A program made the position numbers and the translations under genes. From Setoptus koraiensis (taxonomy: Eukaryota > Animalia > Arthropoda): a stretch of 64,000 nt of DNA. Position 1 is the stretch's first letter. Each line of letters opens with the position of its first letter. The DNA lies in assembly GCA_048013815.1 (NCBI GenBank), contig CM106586.1, positions 19,654,001 to 19,718,000 of the forward strand. Reading direction: 5' to 3'. The notes beneath the pieces were generated by a model. It was not told the origin of the DNA, ran no database searches, and saw nothing but the letters and a program-made list of their open reading frames with translations. Positions 2,284-50,901 of this stretch are shown piece after piece.

Positions 2284-3649
2284 AAACGCTGTGAGCCGGC
2301 CGAGAGCGGAGACATCGGCAACAAGTTGCGTAAACGCTCGACAGGTTGAGGAAGCCGCTTCGAGCTGGCGTTGTGCGCGCCGGCCAGACCGACAAATGTA
2401 CGCCACAAACAAATACGCAACAAGCACAAAATGGGAATAACAAACACAAAATAGGAATAACAAACAAACAAACGACCAACAGGCCAATTACCGTTGCCGG
2501 CAGAAGCGCTCCTTCGACAGCCGCATCAATTCTCAGCCGGTGTGTGTGTCTCGAATCGCTGTCTCGCTCGATATTCTCGTTCTTTCTCGATATTCTCGCT
2601 CTTTCTCGACTTGCTTGATATCTCGACTTGCTTGATCTGTCGATTTGCTTGATCTGTCCATGTGCTCGCTGTGTCGATGCTGTCGCTCTCTGTCGGTATT
2701 AGTGCGCTTAATATCCGACAACAACTTGCTGCTCGATCGGTGTGCGTCGGTGATGTAACCGTGATTCTCATGGGGGCCGCCAGCCGACACAACAACAATC
2801 CCCCGTCTGGCTGGCCGCTGTTGGCGGGCCGGACGCGATTCGATTCAAATTTAAATTCGAGCGACTGCCCAAAACGACCGGTCGGCGTGTCGGAACGAGG
2901 CGTCGTCGCAGCGACGCATCGGATAACGTCCGCATAACGGGTCGTCAATAACGGGTCGCGAATGACGGATCGCAAGCGATGATAAGGCCGCAAAAAAGGA
3001 TTGCCGGAATAATGGCGACGGCGATGATTGCCGGCGAGCACAGGCTGAGCCGATGCGCTTGTGATCGCAACCACTTGTTGCTGCCGCATCCCGATCCTGT
3101 CAGGCCGATTCTGTTGCGAAATATTATTGTTAGCGTTCGATGATTGGCCGCGATCACGCGATCGTCGGGCCGCCGATTTGTGGGTGCTGCCGCCCGCCTG
3201 AGCCCGACTGGGCTCGCTTGAACGGGGCGCGCGAGCTCGCCAATTGAGAGATCGCTGCTCAAGTTGTTGCGATATCGGCAACAAGTTGCGCTCGTCGCAC
3301 TGGCCGAGAGAGGGTGCTGCAACGAAAGTGATCGCCGTTGTCGCTGCTGTCGCTTTTGCCGTTTTTCATGTTGGTGCCGTTGTTGTTGCCGTTGTTGTTG
3401 CCGCTGTTGTTGCCGTTGTTGTTGCTGTTGCGACCACAGTCGGTTGGTGTTGGCGGCGCCAATTTGCGGGCTCGCCGACAGGAGGAAGCGCTCGCATTGA
3501 TAACAGTGATAATATTGCCGCCATGGCCAACATTGCCCGTTGGTCGGCCCGTGGATAATTGCTTGGCTGCGTGGAGTTTTGTGCAAACTTCGGCCGCCGT
3601 TCCGCGCCCGCGATTCGGCCCGTTGGCGGCCCGAGCACAATGGCCACGA

Positions 3650-42267: not shown

Positions 42268-42599
42268 TTCCTTTTCAATATCTGCGCTTAGATCAAATCG
42301 ATTTAATTGATTGTTATGAGAACTCCGATAGTTGAAATGAAGCATAGTATTATAATGGTAATGTAACTAATTTGAATCTTATGAAGTATCAATAAAGGGC
42401 AAGGCGACTTTATTACGCCTGTAACGACCAGAATCTGTCTGATTTTTTGAGGGGAGAGTTAGGACGACCAACTCGGTAAAAATGATTAGATTTTCACCAA
42501 GATTCGAGCATATAAAGCAAGAGGCTATTATGACGATGGTGCGCATTGGAGTTTGCGACCGTGGTACACAGTTAATCAGCAATTGACCATCCTGATTAC

Positions 42600-43320
42600 C
42601 CACCAAAAAGTTTATTGATTTGACGATTGCGTAACTTTTTTCCATTGAAAATCCCGTTACTGTGAGAATACTGTTGATTTTATCGGTGCATTTCGAACAT
42701 GATCTAGCTTTTCATCAACAAAGATTTGGCAAGATTTGCGTCTCATTCAAATGCTCGAGTTTTGTATCCAATAGTGCAAGGCCCTCCAATGTAAATCCGG
42801 GTACAACTATCCCTACGTCCAATGGAGCAACACAAATTGTTGATCCTCCCCTAGCTCACAAGGGGTGCCAAAATCTCGCACTTGTCAGTCTGTTAATGGA
42901 TGAGGGGTCATTTGAATGGAATTCCATGATATTGCCGCGATGTATTATACGCATATCATGTGAATTCTCCATTCCAGCGGCTTGATGTTTCGGCACTAAT
43001 GCGAATTTGATTTCTTCCAAACCAAAACTGTTAGCCTGATCATCAAGTACATGTATATAAAAAAAAATGCAGAGCTCCATTATGAGCACTTCATGATCTG
43101 ATTCTACTGCGATCAGTTCGAATTCATGTTCTCATGGTTCCCTTTTTAAAATTCACCCCTCTGCAGCTCATAAGGCCTCAGATAACTCAGATTGAATTCC
43201 TTCACTGCCACAAGTTCTCTACCATCTTTTTTTTGCTCGTTCTTTCATAAACACTACCTGTTGCTCTCTTGCCCAACAGCATTTGTGGCCCAGATGTAAC
43301 TTTTGAAATAGTGAGGTTGA
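42600..43320 (-). pseudogene. Decayed IKKepsilon/TBK1 (ik2)-like kinase
   Basis: Across shifted frames: SYIW/LLGKRATGSVY (43247-43279), ELVAVKEFNLSYLRPYELQRGEF* (VAVK 43200-43211), NHEN, VLIMELC, LDDQANSFGLEEIKFALV..H.AAGM, IIHR--GNIM (42925-42942), DFGTPCELGEDQQFVLLHWT*G*LYPDL (DFG 42867-42875). Several stops and frameshifts. Confidence 0.85.
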
Positions 43321-43590
43321 AGGTCCTTGTAATTGGTATTAGACCAAATTAGTAGAGTTATTTTGATCAAATTTGGTATAATAACAGTGCAATAGATCAC
43401 GTCTTGAATTTCTGTTTTATTGCTCGGTTTCAGTTGAAATAAGTTGAGACTGCAAATAATCACTGGGTGTAGCTGATTACGAAATGTTTATGTGGCCAGT
43501 TCGTGCTGACAGGTAAGTTAGTTTACTCAGGATGTTGCACTCAAATATTGTCCGTTTCCATGGATCCAATAAATATTACAACAGTAAAGT

Positions 43591-43907
43591 GTTAAATATA
43601 TACTGTATAGCGGTGCAGTCCGAATGAGAGATCTCGAGACAAGAGGCAAAGCATATCAATTTCCGCTACTAATATTGTGTCGGCGAAGAGTTCAAACAGG
43701 AATTATCTCAGTTTCACAACCAAAGTGCAAGAAAATTCCGATCGTAATGGGAGCTTTGTTTTTAGTAGTGATAAATTATCTGAGGTGATGACAACAACTA
43801 TAAGGCAGGCGTTCGATTTAAATCACAGGAAGGACTTAGCTCAGAAAAATACTCAAAGGTTGGAACAGAAAATAATGAACAAAAAAGCGACTGTCCCGGA
43901 TTTTTAG
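43591..43907 (+). pseudogene. Decayed ced-6/GULP1-like PTB-domain adaptor fragment
   Basis: GAVRMRDLETRGKAYQFPL, then frameshifts, then YLSFTTK...SFVFSSDKLSEVMTTTIRQAFDLNHRK, compared with recalled CED-6 'HQFPL..ISYCAD..FSFIAK..CFVF.S.K.A..ITLTIGQAFDLAYRKF'. Confidence 0.7.
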
Positions 43908-45697
43908 ATTCCTCTGTTTTCAAAAGTTGAAATCGTGAATATTCAGATCATTTCGTATCATTTTTCTGTTTATATGGCAGAAAAAGTCAAGATTTTGTGT
44001 TTTCTCATAAGACGTAACTATGTAGGTTTGCTTATACGCGAATCTTCAGAGTTTTGTTATCAACAGAAAAATTTCGAAATTCAACTGCCTAGTGATCATA
44101 CAAAAGTGGTCGGTTGGGTAATACAAGTGGGATCTCTCTAGCTGCTGAGTCGCTTTTTAATATTGCCTATCCTTTATTTGAGAACTTTTTATGTCCGCTT
44201 CTACTTTTGCTGAGGTGCCAGTTGTCATGGCAAACAGTGGTGATGTCTAAATAACAATAATCGAGCTTAATCAACCGGTGATCACTTTACATTTTTCGCG
44301 CACGAAGCGATTGAGAATCTAGATGACAGATAAACAACAGACTTTACGCGCTAACAACTAATCTGAGATTCATCTGTCAACTACTTTTATCATTAGACTT
44401 TCTGCAAATCTCACAACAATGAATGATTTGCGATAACAGACTTCGCATGTCCATACGAGACGCCATAACTAAACAGTAGACATGTCTCGAAATATATTTT
44501 AATCCATGTTGCAGTAATAACATAAAATTCACAGTCGAGATGGCACAAAATTCCTTCAGGGTCTTGGTTTTGCCAGCGAATTTGGACAGCGAATAAAATA
44601 GTGGTTTTTATTGAGTGAACAAATCGCATTTTTGCCCTTCACCATTTCAATCTCGCTGTATTCTCGAATCTTTGTTTCTGGAGATCAGTTCAGAGAGATC
44701 ATCGGAATGTAGTAGCTTAAATAACAGACTAGATTTTCGAACTCGTGCCACCTATGCGCTAACTGAAAAAGATCCATGGCCTTTGATGTTCTGATCTTGG
44801 GAGTTGCCCAAATAGTTGGGCGATATCTCTTGGTTTCCCTATTAATATGATATCAAATATGGATCGAGACAACGAATACTCATTGTGACCTATTGGCAAT
44901 GTTAACACCCGAAATGCTCATGCAATTGAAACATGTCATATGAGCCAGCCAACACTTGACATAGAGAGAATACTGCTGAAAGAAGTAGATCACTCTTAAC
45001 CAGCATTGTCGATACGAAATATAAACCGAACTGAACAATAAGTCATGTGTTAAATTGTCTCATGACAATGATCTGTTTCAGCATGAAACGACTAGATATT
45101 CAGTGATTCTAATGTACCGAAGGATGGATATTTCTCTTTGTCTTGCTTGATCTCGAAGACAAATCCGTTTTGTGAAAAAAAAAAACTCATCATAAGCCAA
45201 CTCTGAATACTTAGCAGAAAAAAGCTTGTTATGGTCATCAGATCTTTTTCATGACTTACGTAACTTTGCAGCCTATGAGTCATGGCAAGATTCTGAGGAA
45301 ATTCCAAGTTGCATTGTTACAAAAGTTCGCCACTTGTGCGAGAAGTTTCTCCTTAGAATAATGTTTGCAACGAAACATGAGAGGGCGCTTGTGATGACTA
45401 AAGTAAACAACGGAACAGTTACGTTGACACATTTGTGTGCACTTATAGCGCCCCCTTCAGTAATTGTGCTGAAGTAGACCTAATGGCTATACTTTAGTAT
45501 TGCGATGTTCAAAAATATGCAATCGCATGACAAATGCAGCCTCTGGATCAGAAACATCACAAAGAATTCAGTTAAAGGCTAGTTGGCCTGTTTACTTATC
45601 TATTATTACAATCATTTTTGTTACCACCAAGTTCTGTGTCGTCATACGACATCATACAGAAATCAGTGAGAATATTTGACACATTGATAATGTAAAA

Positions 45698-48600
45698 ATG
45701 GCGGCCGCTGAGAATCTAGGGATCAGAAACATTAATCAAGATCAGCAACAATTTTCACCTGATGTCATTCATTTTCAGAAACGAGTGGAGGATCTCATAG
45801 CATGGATCTTCGAAATGGAGGAGAGATTCTTAAAACGGTCCAGCACGCCATCTATTAAAGATTCGTCCTCAGAGGAGCTTCTCGATCAATACAGTGATCA
45901 TGAAAAACATATGACTGAATTGAGTCGATACAATTCCATTATTAACCAATGTCGCGACGACGGAGAAGCATTAAAAAACCGCCTTAAACCAGACGAGCAA
46001 CATGAAGTTGCTATCCAAATCAATGCTTTAATGAGTTGTTATGAAAAACTTAAAATCCTTTCAATAGAGAAGTTACAAAAACTACAGAGCTCATTGGAGG
46101 AACGACAGCAAAGTCAAATAGATAGATTTGATGAATGGCTTTCCTCTGTAGAGGGTTCGATAGCAAGTTCAAACATGATTGGACCAGATTATCAATCAAT
46201 CGAAGCTCAAAAGGAAGACTTGAAACGATTACAACATGAACTTGAAATGAAGCAAGAATTCTTGAATTGTATGTCAAAAATGATATTGGTGTTCGATGAG
46301 GTAGATCCTGAGTCATTGCAAATAAGAAGCATATCTTGTGACGATTTAGACGATCAGCTCAGTGACCTAAATCATCGATGGACAGAAGTGTGTGAATATG
46401 TAGATAAACGGGGCTATGAACTACGCAACGCTGAGTCAGCTTGGAGACCATTGTTAGAAGATGGAGCCAAACTATCGTCATGGATGAGACGTATTGAAAA
46501 TCGTCTCGAAGAGATGGAATCAGCCGCCAGAGACTTACAATCAGAACCAGAAGCACATTTTATTGATGAACTTCGCGAAAGATACTTAAAAATAGACTCA
46601 GAAATCAAGAATAAACAATTGGCATTTCGCAATCTAGAAACCAAGACTAGACAAGCCATCGACAAGTTTGATGATTCATGTTCTATGTTGGTAATAGAGA
46701 TTGAAAGGAAAATAGAGGACCTTCAGGATGCATGGGGCTCTATCATTTGTCGGCAGCGAGAGTTGCAGAAATATCTGCTAGGCGAAACTGGCGACTTTAT
46801 CAGCATTCCAATACCAGAACCAATAACATCCAGATATGATATTGACACAACTAGAGGAAGCTCCTTATCTCCAAGAGATATTTCACCAGACCCTAGAAAT
46901 AATTATCATAGCAATTCCAACCAATCGTCTTCCAATTCATCTTTCCATCCCACTAAACTGAGCAACTCAAATTTCAGTCAAGGAGATGCTCCGAATAATC
47001 ATCATGATTCTAGCTACCCAGGTTCTACTAATGATGTCTATAAGAACATAAACGATACTGAATCTAGAAACCACAGTCACCTGTCAGATGATGATATCCC
47101 AGAAGCTAACAGTACTTCTCCGAAACTTGACAGCTGTAGAGTAGAAGAATGGAAACATGCCCTCGAATCTTTCTCTTTATGGTTAAAACAAGTGGAAACT
47201 TCTCTGGGTGTCAATCAGGGCATTACAGAGGAGGGCTTGGAACCCACTTGGTCCAGATTATCATTGCATGACCAATCAGTTTTATTGGACGATATAGAGC
47301 AGCAAGTTGTCACAACTTGCCGCGATGAGTTTGACTGCCTAATATTACAAGGACAACAAATAATTGAAGACTTATCTCCAGAGATAGATGAAAATGATCT
47401 GGCAAATTTGCGAAGTATTTTGAACGATATCGATGATCGATGGAACTCTGTAAAACAATGCTTGATTGATAGACGCAAGGAGATATTCAAGAAAGATAGG
47501 TGGAATCATTTGCTAAAAAAATTAAGGGATCTAAATGGATGGCTAAAACAAAAAGGGGACGATCTGATGCCTGAATCAGATATTGGTGGTGATTTGATAA
47601 CTTTAGCTCAACAGCAAGATCATCTCATGCAAACCAAAGGAGACTTGAATGAAAACTCGTCATTCGAAGCTAGTCTAGCGGAAGCAAAATTATTTTTGAA
47701 AATATTCAATGACTTGGAACAAAAATCCAAATATAAATCTACTGAGTTAGATTGCATATTAGATTACGACATGAAAATGTTGAAGGAAGATATTGAAGCG
47801 GAAATGAATAAGCTTTCCTTCCACCACTCTGAACTGTCACAACAATTAGAGAACCGCATCTGTAGGCTCGATGAAGTTCACCGTGAGATGCACTCGTTAC
47901 AACAGCGAACACAAGAATTCGCTACAAAGTTACAAGTAGCAGAAATACTTAGATCGAATTGGCAACCTGTTGCTCTGTTGACTATTGATCAGCTCTCGGA
48001 ACAATTAGAAGATCTCAAGTTATTCCGGGAACGCTTGACCGAAATAGAAACTGTGCATAAGCAATTGAACGGAATCTTCGAATGGATGACAAATCTTCAA
48101 GTCCCCCTCAGTCAGGCCAACCTAAAACGACTTAGTGAACTGAATACTATTTGGAGTCTATTTATCATAGCGGTTGACGAAAGGCAAAAATCGATCGAAC
48201 AGGCTTTTGACAACCAAGGCTCCTCAGAGCAATCTTTTCTCGCCAATACTGTCAAGCACCCATGGGAAAGGAGAGTAGCAGCTAGTAAGGTTCCCTATTT
48301 TGTTGATCACAGCAGCGAAATAACAAATTGGGATCATCCAGCATTCTCAGAGTTGATGGCATCATTGAATGGCTACAACGATATAATATACTCAGCTTAC
48401 AGGACAGCCATAAAGTTGAGAGCTATACAAAAACGATTGGGTATAGATCTACTCATGTTGGAAACATTCCAAGAAATATTTGACGAGTTTGGCTTAAGAG
48501 CTAAAAACGAAAAATTGATTGGAGCTAATGAGATTATTAGGTGTCTCAAGATTATTTTCGAACGACTGCAAATGGACGAGAAGCGATCGCTAGATATGCC

Positions 48601-49276
48601 ACTTTGTGTTGATCTAAGTCTAAACTGGTTGCTCAACCTTTTTGATTGCACACGGACTGGTTACATCAGAATTCTATCATTCAAAATAGGTTTAACATTA
48701 CTTTGTTGCGCCACGAGAGAAGAAAAATGCTCTTACATGTTTCAGTTGGTTTCTAATCAGCAGGGTATAGTGGATGACAGAAAATTAGGTCTATTATTTG
48801 AGGATTGCATGCAGATACCAAGACTGCTAGGAGAGTTTGAAGCGTTCGGTGGTCAATCAGTGGTGGAAGAAAGTATAAGAAGCTGTTTCTCACAAGCGAG
48901 ATACAATCCACATCATCCATCGTCTATTGTTTTTGAAGACTTTTTTAACTGGCTTAGGAATGAGCCTCAATTTATTATTTGGTTACCAGTTCTCCATAGG
49001 ATAATAGTATCAGAAAAAGCATGCCACAATATTAAGTGTAAAATATGCCGCGTCTTTCCAATCGTTGGGCTACGATACCGATGCTTGAAATGTTTCAATT
49101 ATGATATTTGCCAAGACTGTTTTATGTTAGGTCGCAATCTATTGCATCATAAAAAAACAAATGGACATCCATTCCAGGAGTATTGGTCTGTTGCTAGCCC
49201 AGGTGAGAATGTTAGAGATATGACTAAGATATTGCGTAACAAATTGAGACCAAAGAATTTCATGATTGGCAACTGA
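45698..49276 (+). CDS. Dys: Short dystrophin-family protein: ~6 spectrin repeats, WW, EF-hands, ZZ; 1192 aa, single ORF
   Basis: WW PWERRVAASKVPYFVDHSSEITNWDHP; YSAYRTAIKLRAIQKRLGIDLL; PLCVDLSLNWLLNLFD..RTG.IR.LSFKIG; EPQFIIWLPVLHR; ZZ C..C...PIVGLRYRCLKCFNYDICQDCF. Confidence 0.92.
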   Translation: MAAAENLGIRNINQDQQQFSPDVIHFQKRVEDLIAWIFEMEERFLKRSSTPSIKDSSSEELLDQYSDHEKHMTELSRYNSIINQCRDDGEALKNRLKPDEQHEVAIQINALMSCYEKLKILSIEKLQKLQSSLEERQQSQIDRFDEWLSSVEGSIASSNMIGPDYQSIEAQKEDLKRLQHELEMKQEFLNCMSKMILVFDEVDPESLQIRSISCDDLDDQLSDLNHRWTEVCEYVDKRGYELRNAESAWRPLLEDGAKLSSWMRRIENRLEEMESAARDLQSEPEAHFIDELRERYLKIDSEIKNKQLAFRNLETKTRQAIDKFDDSCSMLVIEIERKIEDLQDAWGSIICRQRELQKYLLGETGDFISIPIPEPITSRYDIDTTRGSSLSPRDISPDPRNNYHSNSNQSSSNSSFHPTKLSNSNFSQGDAPNNHHDSSYPGSTNDVYKNINDTESRNHSHLSDDDIPEANSTSPKLDSCRVEEWKHALESFSLWLKQVETSLGVNQGITEEGLEPTWSRLSLHDQSVLLDDIEQQVVTTCRDEFDCLILQGQQIIEDLSPEIDENDLANLRSILNDIDDRWNSVKQCLIDRRKEIFKKDRWNHLLKKLRDLNGWLKQKGDDLMPESDIGGDLITLAQQQDHLMQTKGDLNENSSFEASLAEAKLFLKIFNDLEQKSKYKSTELDCILDYDMKMLKEDIEAEMNKLSFHHSELSQQLENRICRLDEVHREMHSLQQRTQEFATKLQVAEILRSNWQPVALLTIDQLSEQLEDLKLFRERLTEIETVHKQLNGIFEWMTNLQVPLSQANLKRLSELNTIWSLFIIAVDERQKSIEQAFDNQGSSEQSFLANTVKHPWERRVAASKVPYFVDHSSEITNWDHPAFSELMASLNGYNDIIYSAYRTAIKLRAIQKRLGIDLLMLETFQEIFDEFGLRAKNEKLIGANEIIRCLKIIFERLQMDEKRSLDMPLCVDLSLNWLLNLFDCTRTGYIRILSFKIGLTLLCCATREEKCSYMFQLVSNQQGIVDDRKLGLLFEDCMQIPRLLGEFEAFGGQSVVEESIRSCFSQARYNPHHPSSIVFEDFFNWLRNEPQFIIWLPVLHRIIVSEKACHNIKCKICRVFPIVGLRYRCLKCFNYDICQDCFMLGRNLLHHKKTNGHPFQEYWSVASPGENVRDMTKILRNKLRPKNFMIGN

Positions 49277-49533
49277 ACAAGTTAGATAACAATGTAGTGT
49301 TGATTTTTATAGAAATTTTGTAAGTACACAAAATGTACAGTTTGTAGGAGAGGGTTTTCCTCTTTGATCGAACTCTATTAATGCGTTGTCTAGACAAATA
49401 AATTAACTATAAGTAGGTCTGTAGATTAGACTTTTGTACATAGAAACACAGGGTTAGTAAGAGTTACTACAATAGATCCCACTAAAAGATAACATTATTA
49501 GGTCTTTGTTCATCTGTTCTTCATTGTTTGTTG

Positions 49534-50901
49534 TCAGGCATCGGAACAAGCACAATTGGGATTTGGCTGACAAGTATGGTTGGGTGTCCATGGGCCAGAG
49601 CTATTCTTGGCGTAATAGTCCATAGGGTAGTGGGAATCCAGATTGCACTCTGACTTTCCTTGGATGCATTCTGAGGTAGGAGAATTTCGTTGCGCAAACT
49701 TTTTGATACACTGACTAAACTCAAATGTATTTAGCAGAGGTACTTGAAAGAATGAGCCCCAGTCAATGCTCAAACGTGGACATGCTACTTGAACCCAGGC
49801 GTCGACATCATGAAAATTTTGAAGTGTATCTTGCACAACTTCGGGCAGTAAGACACGTAGCATTTTGCACTTGGTGTGAGCTTTCAATTGATTGCATAGT
49901 AGATCAAAGACTTTTTCGCTACCCTGACGCCCTAATGTGCCCAAAACTATGCCAAATGTTCCATTATTTTCCATCGCCTTGAGACCTAGATCGATTGCAC
50001 TCATCCTTTGTTGATACATTTCTTCAAATTTGTAATGCTCGCGTGTAAGCTTACGCGAATAAGGGTCGTACCTATATGATGGTATTTTGGGATTGGCTAT
50101 CATAAGTGCCTCCAGATGGAATCTACCATCGCAGATAAATATGATAGCTGTTATGTCACTGGATAATTTCGGGGCAGTACAACCCAATATCTCACCAGAA
50201 CTGAGAGGCCGAGACTGGGGTAGAGTAATTTGATAACCTAGACCTTTTAATTTACGGGATATGTCGTGCACAGAGGTCACAAATTGGATGGTAGAGGCGA
50301 TTGCTATTTGATGCTCAGATGGCTGAAAATTGTGCTGAATACATTCTACCAAGTGATCTAGATCGAATTTTATATCAACGAAAACATACAGAAATTTGAC
50401 GTCCTTGTTGAGATTATTGATTGGAACTAGACAAGAGTGTGCGTAGTGTACGATGAGATCACAATTCATGGATGAGGCAAGAAAGTCATCGATACAACAG
50501 GCCCCGTAAGTAAGATCGCCCATAGTTATACAGTCAACTTCATGTTTGTCTTTGATTCCATTAAAGTAAGAGCAGATAATGTCCACTATAGTGGGGCCAA
50601 ATCTAATTAATCCCTCGGGAAATTGCAATAGGACACGCTTGGATTCGTTGCATTTGATGCGCCAGATTGTCTTGTGGATTTCAAAGTTATAGTTCTTAGG
50701 CAGACCTGCCTTGATTAGGGCATTCAACTCACAATCATTCAGTATTTCGTCCGGTATGATGTTAATGTGACAAACGTTTGCAGTTTTCTTGGCCGCGACT
50801 ATACATTTTCTGTCTGCTACTGGCGCGGCCTGAAAAACACGTTCAGAACTTGATCTTGGCTCGTCGAGATTCTCGTGCTGTTGCTCAGGAAATTCGGTCA
50901 T
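49534..50901 (-). CDS. DPH1: Diphthamide biosynthesis protein 1, 455 aa, intronless
   Basis: LPKNYNFEIHKTIW, LQFPEGL, MGDLTYGACCIDDF, HYAHSCLVP, PLSSGEILGCTAP, DGRFHLE, LGTLGRQG, QVACPRLSIDWG. Confidence 0.95.
   Translation of the reverse strand: MTEFPEQQHENLDEPRSSSERVFQAAPVADRKCIVAAKKTANVCHINIIPDEILNDCELNALIKAGLPKNYNFEIHKTIWRIKCNESKRVLLQFPEGLIRFGPTIVDIICSYFNGIKDKHEVDCITMGDLTYGACCIDDFLASSMNCDLIVHYAHSCLVPINNLNKDVKFLYVFVDIKFDLDHLVECIQHNFQPSEHQIAIASTIQFVTSVHDISRKLKGLGYQITLPQSRPLSSGEILGCTAPKLSSDITAIIFICDGRFHLEALMIANPKIPSYRYDPYSRKLTREHYKFEEMYQQRMSAIDLGLKAMENNGTFGIVLGTLGRQGSEKVFDLLCNQLKAHTKCKMLRVLLPEVVQDTLQNFHDVDAWVQVACPRLSIDWGSFFQVPLLNTFEFSQCIKKFAQRNSPTSECIQGKSECNLDSHYPMDYYAKNSSGPWTPNHTCQPNPNCACSDA

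Follow-up and report, generated by a model that had tools for sequence, protein, structure and literature searches.

A six-repeat dystrophin lacking CH domains and a C-terminal region is conserved across eriophyoid mites

How much of dystrophin can an animal lineage dispense with? The question is raised by a gene in a 64,000-nucleotide stretch of the genome of the eriophyoid mite Setoptus koraiensis (GenBank assembly GCA_048013815.1, contig CM106586.1, positions 19,654,001 to 19,718,000; hereafter "the window", to whose coordinates all positions refer unless another locus is named). A single open reading frame (ORF) in this window encodes a dystrophin-like protein that has only two short blocks of spectrin repeats, and it was described in an initial annotation as a natural, intronless counterpart of the micro-dystrophins built for gene therapy. 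In this study, we examine which parts of dystrophin the protein retains, whether the gene is complete, and how it relates to known short forms. The analysis indicates that the ORF is probably the sole dystrophin orthologue of this eriophyoid mite, from which the actin-binding head, rod repeats R4-R21 and the C-terminal region were lost in the stem lineage, and that its product is a putative membrane-docked scaffold.

The ORF (45698-49276, + strand) consists of 1192 codons and a stop in a single frame. It opens with an ATG in the context AAAATGG, a TGA stands in frame six codons 5' of this ATG (45677-45679), and the protein terminates in ...KILRNKLRPKNFMIGN, about 40 residues beyond the ZZ domain. 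Searches against Pfam identified, in order, Spectrin (1.3e-18), a weak WW, EF-hand_2, EF-hand_3 and ZZ, which is the order of the module in dystrophin and utrophin; no CH domain was found in the ORF, so that the canonical tandem CH head is missing. In an AlphaFold2 model, residues 21-360 form seven long helices that we read as three spectrin repeats, with the final helix of one repeat continuing into the first helix of the next and with a predicted local distance difference test score (pLDDT) of mostly 80-90. Residues 361-479 (nucleotides 46778-47134) are disordered in the model, at a pLDDT of 25-30, and make up a Ser/Asn/Pro-rich linker of 119 residues that opens with a conserved IP(I/L)P(E/D)PIT motif and varies in length across orthologues. 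The helices of residues 480-840 provide three further repeats and are followed by the WW strands and the EF-hand helices; the input alignment of 13 orthologues was shallow, and the ZZ end is poorly modelled. By the model, then, the rod comprises six spectrin repeats and one disordered linker in place of the canonical rod of about 24 repeats and four hinges. The anatomy first proposed, of three repeats, a linker at about 46800-47140, three repeats, WW-EF-ZZ and a stop just after ZZ, was accurate to within a few codons.

The repeats could be placed on the dystrophin rod by several alignments. With the single sequence, residues 23-284 align to positions 341-596 of full-length dystrophin (PDB 9c3c_D), and residues 483-1189 align to positions 2685-3379. 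A family profile built from ten mite orthologues extends the front match, with profile positions 29-371 aligned to dystrophin 343-670 at 91.8 bits, which is the entire R1-R3 segment up to the start of hinge 2; any other placement of the front block on the rod scored 17 bits or less. The same profile matches crystal structures of dystrophin R1 and utrophin R1. For the rear block, a profile-profile alignment with Varroa dystrophin is colinear over window-protein residues 498-1187, so that the rear block comprises the final three repeats ahead of WW. Spectrin repeats immediately preceding WW and colinear with R22-R24 are a trait of dystrophin and utrophin, and separate the protein from dystrobrevin and dystrotelin. 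A dystrophin fragment (PDB 9ec1) aligns to residues 731-837, residues 867-1189 match human dystrophin with high identity (8yt8_E, 1.6e-93), and BLAST against the dystrophin of the mite Dinothrombium gave 44% identity across residues 600-1189, rising to about 51% in the cysteine-rich region. Isolated repeat pieces (residues 243-375 and 478-730) drew no dystrophin match among PDB sequences, and R3 and R22 are consequently the weakest assignments. Judged by these alignments, the assignments of R1-R2, R23 and R24 are firm, and the R1-R3 plus R22-R24 identity proposed in the initial annotation is borne out by the PDB, profile and Varroa comparisons.

The short form is not confined to this species. 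Among named proteins, the nearest is "Utrophin, partial" from the eriophyoid mite Fragariocoptes setiger, and in a tree of the R24-ZZ region, made by a quick method and with no dystrobrevin among the outgroups, the window protein groups with twelve other short proteins in a single clade with a Shimodaira-Hasegawa-like approximate likelihood ratio test (SH-aLRT) support of 100. This clade is sister to the trombidiform mites Dinothrombium and Leptotrombidium (SH-aLRT 99), inside the chelicerates, on a long stem branch of 0.68 substitutions per site. When the short orthologues are aligned, the start methionine occupies a single column (invariant in alignment A1, at least 90% in A2). At the other end, the 13 short orthologues stop 0-25 residues past the common end of the alignment, whereas complete outgroup dystrophins go on for 230-584 residues. 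Identity among the 13 orthologues is 43-49% overall, except for one 95%-identical relative (locus L016). Across this divergence the WW domain shows no change at W856, H871, W878 and P881 and almost none at T876, and the Cys and His ligands of the ZZ domain are all invariant. The short architecture is the ancestral state across the clade, present in at least 13 divergent orthologues, and not a one-off of this species. Against L016 the ratio of nonsynonymous to synonymous substitution rates (dN/dS) is 0.039 at a dS of 0.60; by region it is 0.027 for R1-R3, 0.082 for the linker, 0.036 for R22-R24 and 0.046 for WW-EF-ZZ. These values show that the mini-dystrophin is under strong purifying selection. 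Gene order around L016 is the same as in the window: UQ_con, RRP7, claudin-like, dystrophin, DPH1.

The lack of introns, to which the initial annotation had drawn attention, holds for this gene but is a genome-wide trait of eriophyoids. The share of intronless genes in Aculops lycopersici is 83.7% (PMC7738191), and since more than 80% of genes in the group have no intron, a single-exon dystrophin is ordinary in such a genome. The trait is also not absolute, as the dystrophin of one relative retains a single 86-nt GT..AG intron (L008:9267-9352) after the residues NWLLNLYDS that is absent from the window gene; its spliced product is 1302 aa long. An intron of this kind leads ORF-based gene callers to split or shorten the protein, and the predicted proteins P0007-P0020 end there.

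A further question was whether the genome holds a second dystrophin and the usual partners of the protein. Searches of the assembly (48.8 Mb in two contigs) with the window protein returned this gene alone, besides unrelated ZZ fingers; the EF-hand_2 family has a single locus; and a Varroa rod query (P0084, residues 1-1000) matches this gene only, in R22/23-R24. The single EF-hand_2 locus implies that there is neither a dystrobrevin nor a second dystrophin, a possibility that had been left for checking. Two components of the membrane complex do have candidates. A dystroglycan-like gene (L007:3993-8186; G000:C2:22607992-22612185) encodes a highly divergent protein of 1397 aa with one transmembrane segment, similar to dystroglycan in the second cadherin-like domain and around the cleavage site; a word search for its orthologues gave one weak match, swamped by low-complexity words. 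A sarcoglycan_1 gene is also present. The syntrophin families PH_17 and Syntrophin_4th (PF18012, PF23012) and the alpha/epsilon-sarcoglycan family Sarcoglycan_2 (PF05510) were not found in the genome with these queries, which had no positive control.

The ORF might be the main exon of a larger gene, with distant CH exons upstream or C-terminal exons past DPH1. An acceptor-like TTTTCAG string lies at 45772-45778, the intergenic region upstream is unusually long (3.4 kb, as opposed to 1.25 kb in L016, at L016:3245-4498), a few introns persist in the lineage, and no run recorded as RNA covers the locus. However, the codons around 45778 are conserved among orthologues, including those 5' of the site, and the alignment to the start of human R1 crosses it. 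Contigs from two runs (X4 and X5, library type unknown) are likewise colinear with the genome over 45552-45785 and unbroken across 45778. These contigs start at 45552 and 45572; no contig falls in 44000-45551 and only patches are covered from 45552 on, which suggests a transcript start without proving one. Within 1 Mb of the ORF no CH match was detected, the nearest being more than 1 Mb off, and + strand ORFs in 42268-45697 have no CH similarity. In four species a stop codon stands in frame 3-31 codons 5' of the same start methionine. Nor do relatives leave much room for a distant head: the next gene upstream is claudin-like both in the window and in L016, whose gap measures just 1255 bp; L008 has YIF1 at this side, head-to-head and 425 bp away; and L010 has B9-C2. 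Alignment with L016 is good over no more than the proximal 470 bp or so upstream, and the remaining intergenic DNA (42268-45224) is not alignable. On the C-terminal side, the alignment to Dinothrombium stops at its residue 776 of 1081, and the remaining 305-residue region of Dinothrombium, used as a query against the whole genome, found nothing at E<=1. The 257-bp spacer to DPH1, a distance that had been read correctly from the sequence, is too short for a C-terminal region of 300 residues, and all 13 orthologues stop within 25 residues of one point. A larger gene is therefore very improbable, and the absence of CH domains and of a C-terminal region, both proposed at the outset, is upheld by these searches.

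It is harder still to credit the alternative that the ORF is a retrocopy of a short or misspliced transcript, or a decaying remnant, with a working full-length gene elsewhere or unassembled. An intronless, internally deleted gene is what a processed, exon-skipped transcript would be expected to leave, and a possible split of dystrophin has been reported in rotifers (PMC10293626), but the genome searches described above return only this locus, the dN/dS is about 0.04, 13 divergent species share this architecture at loci that are not syntenic, one of them with an intron, and most genes in these mites are intronless anyway. Unlikely, though less so, is the idea that the protein has been repurposed outside the dystroglycan complex, its WW-EF-ZZ module binding some other PPxY partner and its repeats serving a new role. 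The dystroglycan-like tail without PPxY, the long mite stem branch, the loss of the actin-binding domain and C-terminal region, and the failure to find dystrobrevin and syntrophin would all suit such a change. In contrast, the cysteine-rich region remains close to that of human and Dinothrombium dystrophin, the key residues of WW and ZZ are invariant, dystroglycan-like and sarcoglycan-like genes are kept, and in the solved complex (PDB 1eg4) the EF-hand region touches beta-dystroglycan beyond the PPxY motif too.

The reading that we prefer, a secondarily reduced dystrophin orthologue, builds on architecture, repeat homology, a single locus, clade-wide conservation and purifying selection. In the eriophyoid stem, a dystrophin gene would have lost the CH-CH head with hinge 1, R4-R21 and the C-terminal syntrophin/dystrobrevin-binding region, leaving R1-R3, a disordered hinge-like linker, R22-R24 and WW-EF-ZZ; genome-wide purging of introns would then have left one exon in this species. 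The WW-EF-ZZ module may still dock on a partner at the membrane, which in the canonical case is the beta-dystroglycan tail, and two three-repeat blocks on a flexible tether would form a short sub-membrane scaffold. Because the protein has neither CH domains nor the R11-R17 actin-binding region, it would provide no direct actin bridge, and it could instead organise or stabilise the dystroglycan-sarcoglycan complex, as do vertebrate short isoforms that have no actin-binding domain. The loss of the C-terminal region is consistent with the apparent lack of the two proteins that bind it, dystrobrevin and syntrophin.

Several points weigh against this reading. No PPxY or LPxY is present in the 231-residue tail of the dystroglycan-like protein, and the canonical WW ligand is thus missing although the WW domain is conserved. 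A complex prediction for residues 841-1192 with this tail scored 0.01, a value that weighs neither way on binding. R3 is assigned weakly by the single sequence and becomes visible only with the profile, and the weak assignment of R22 comes from colinear extension. The putative ends of the transcript are drawn from the structure of the ORF, from conservation and from contigs whose library type is unknown. Syntrophin, alpha/epsilon-sarcoglycan and the C-terminal region were judged absent from six-frame searches made with a small set of queries, in a genome that evolves fast. Roles for the two mite blocks would be transferred from vertebrate work, where lipid binding is established for R1-R3 of human dystrophin and a contribution to microtubule binding for R20-R23. 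Lastly, the timing of the loss of CH domains and rod relies on literature in which the full dystrophin structure is near-universal in bilaterians (PMC10293626).

Comparison with known dystrophins helps to define what kind of short form this is. By phylogeny, the mite protein is orthologous to full-length dystrophin and utrophin, as represented by human DMD Dp427, the long forms of Drosophila Dys and C. elegans dys-1. R1-R3, R22-R24, WW, EF-hand_2/3 and ZZ have homologues there and keep their order (hinge H4 was not treated separately), whereas CH-CH, hinge 1, the 18 repeats R4-R21 and the C-terminal syntrophin/dystrobrevin-binding coiled coil are missing. The mite protein has 1192 residues encoded in one exon, compared to about 3500-3700 residues and dozens of exons in the full-length forms.

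The likeness to therapeutic designs, put forward as evolutionary convergence, is partial. Clinical micro-dystrophins always have R1 and R24, with further repeats taken from R2, R3, R22 and R23 (PMC10293626), and in designs such as R1-R3+R24 or R1-R2+R22-R24 (PMC10293626) the rod is cut to its two ends as it is in the mite. Both also keep the cysteine-rich region, drop the C-terminal region and have about 3.6 kb of coding sequence. Convergence is nevertheless an overstatement, in that every therapeutic construct retains hinge 1 and the N-terminal actin-binding domain, both of which are absent from the mite protein; without that domain, the protein cannot link actin directly to dystroglycan as micro-dystrophins do. 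The linker of the mite protein is the disordered Ser/Asn/Pro segment and not human H2 or H3. The mite form is a natural deletion kept across a whole superfamily, and the likeness is one of functional analogy, not of descent. The protein is closer to those short isoforms of vertebrates that have no actin-binding domain than to a therapeutic micro-dystrophin. The internal-promoter isoforms of vertebrates (Dp260, Dp140, Dp116, Dp71, Dp40) and of Drosophila (Dp186, Dp205, Dp117) have no CH domains but nonetheless work together with dystroglycan at membranes, and Dp40 likewise lacks the normal C-terminus. These isoforms, however, are contiguous C-terminal parts made alongside a full-length product, whereas the mite gene fuses R1-R3 to R22-R24 and has no longer product. 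Sponge dystrophin (Amphimedon) offers another parallel, with six repeats from about SR20, a dystroglycan-interacting domain and no actin-binding head (PMC10293626). The sponge form is ancestral and predates the fusion that gave the long rod; in contrast, reduction in the mite is secondary, and R1-R3, from the part of the rod that was acquired later, have been retained.

Among the papers that could be searched, none names dystrophin together with eriophyoid terms, and the Aculops genome paper makes no mention of dystrophin or spectrin (PMC7738191). What is new here is a secondarily reduced dystrophin, shared across a lineage, in which R1-R3 and R22-R24 remain; the intronless state alone is unremarkable in these genomes. 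Evolutionary conservation has been proposed as a guide to the design of micro-dystrophins (PMC10293626). Here a whole animal lineage keeps a six-repeat dystrophin under strong selection, and the repeats retained are those on which gene-therapy constructs draw, minus the head. Two questions thereby become testable: which rod repeats are intrinsically indispensable, and whether the dystroglycan-binding end can work without a direct actin link, syntrophin and dystrobrevin. The gene is also a clear case of protein-level streamlining beside genome miniaturisation, in one of the smallest arthropods. We raise, tentatively and with more doubt than belief, the further proposal that eriophyoids run a stripped-down complex of a dystroglycan-like protein, a sarcoglycan-like protein and the mini-dystrophin, without an actin-binding domain, dystrobrevin or syntrophin, in which the rod ends R1-R3 and R22-R24, and not the actin link, would be the indispensable core. 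If this were true, selection over a long time would have preserved exactly R1-R3 and R22-R24, the ends of the rod would be the core of dystrophin function in an entire lineage of animals, and the mite protein would offer a naturally validated template for minimal dystrophins.

Table 1. Coordinates of the mini-dystrophin gene, its parts and its flanks in the window
Feature	Position	Strand	Evidence or remark
Proximal upstream region, probable promoter and 5' untranslated region	45225..45697	+	~75% identity to upstream region of relative L016
Single-exon mini-dystrophin ORF	45698..49276	+	Pfam, PDB alignment, dN/dS 0.039 vs L016
N-terminal 20 residues ahead of repeat 1, no CH, no hinge 1	45698..45757	+	Start Met column shared; disordered in model
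Three spectrin repeats, residues 21-360, homologous to R1-R3	45758..46777	+	Family profile, R1 crystal matches, model helices
Ser/Asn/Pro linker, residues 361-479, hinge-like position	46778..47134	+	pLDDT 25-30; dN/dS 0.08
Three spectrin repeats, residues 480-840, colinear with R22-R24	47135..48217	+	PDB and profile alignments, model helices
WW domain, residues 854-881	48257..48340	+	Pfam 18.6 bits, under cut-off; aligns to WW of 1eg3
EF-hand_2 (885-1003) and EF-hand_3 (1008-1102), dystroglycan-binding cysteine-rich region	48350..49003	+	Pfam 4e-36, 4e-25
ZZ zinc finger, residues 1110-1149	49025..49144	+	Pfam 1e-9
Short tail and stop	49145..49276	+	Ends where C-terminal syntrophin/dystrobrevin-binding region starts in other dystrophins
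Tail-to-tail spacer to DPH1, 257 bp, AATAAA at 49397-49402	49277..49533		80% identity to spacer of relative
DPH1-type diphthamide-synthesis ORF	49534-50901	-	Diphthamide_syn 1e-94; convergent neighbour

CH genes elsewhere in the genome were considered as a possible missing head and rejected, as no checked locus best-matches dystrophin or utrophin. Five loci, a subset of the CH matches in the genome, were covered. L011, L012 and L013 were read by eye as beta-spectrin (in a 2148-aa frame), alpha-actinin and filamin; a PDB search placed L014 as MACF1/beta-spectrin-like; and the CH2 ORF of L015 is spectrin-like by PDB search and incompletely classified. The last of these (L015:913-2217; G000:C2:22887412-22888716) is an open frame of 435 residues that begins with a spectrin-type CH2 and finishes in a poly-proline tail, with no CH1 nearby.

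Some minor features were observed around the gene and in its relatives. A minimal upstream ORF, ATG-TAA, lies at 45690-45695, two bases 5' of the dystrophin start and in a different frame; at this site the relative reads CATGCAAAAATGG, with the ATG retained and the TAA not. The extra upstream DNA of the window holds a weak PTB/PID-like ORF at 43677-43904 (E 0.016). In the Fragariocoptes setiger entry (P0002), N-terminal HLH and Med27 domains precede the dystrophin part, which begins at about residue 400, apparently through the merging of neighbouring genes by annotation. An Rfam search of the window gave no match. Base composition shifts sharply along the window, from 49-60% GC in positions 1-28000 to 38-45% GC in the gene-dense positions 30000-64000. 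Long ATG-started ORFs are nearly absent from the first 28 kb, which has five of 150-290 aa, mostly overlapping, and is rich in micro- and minisatellites, of CAA/CAG type and with units of 7-34 bp.

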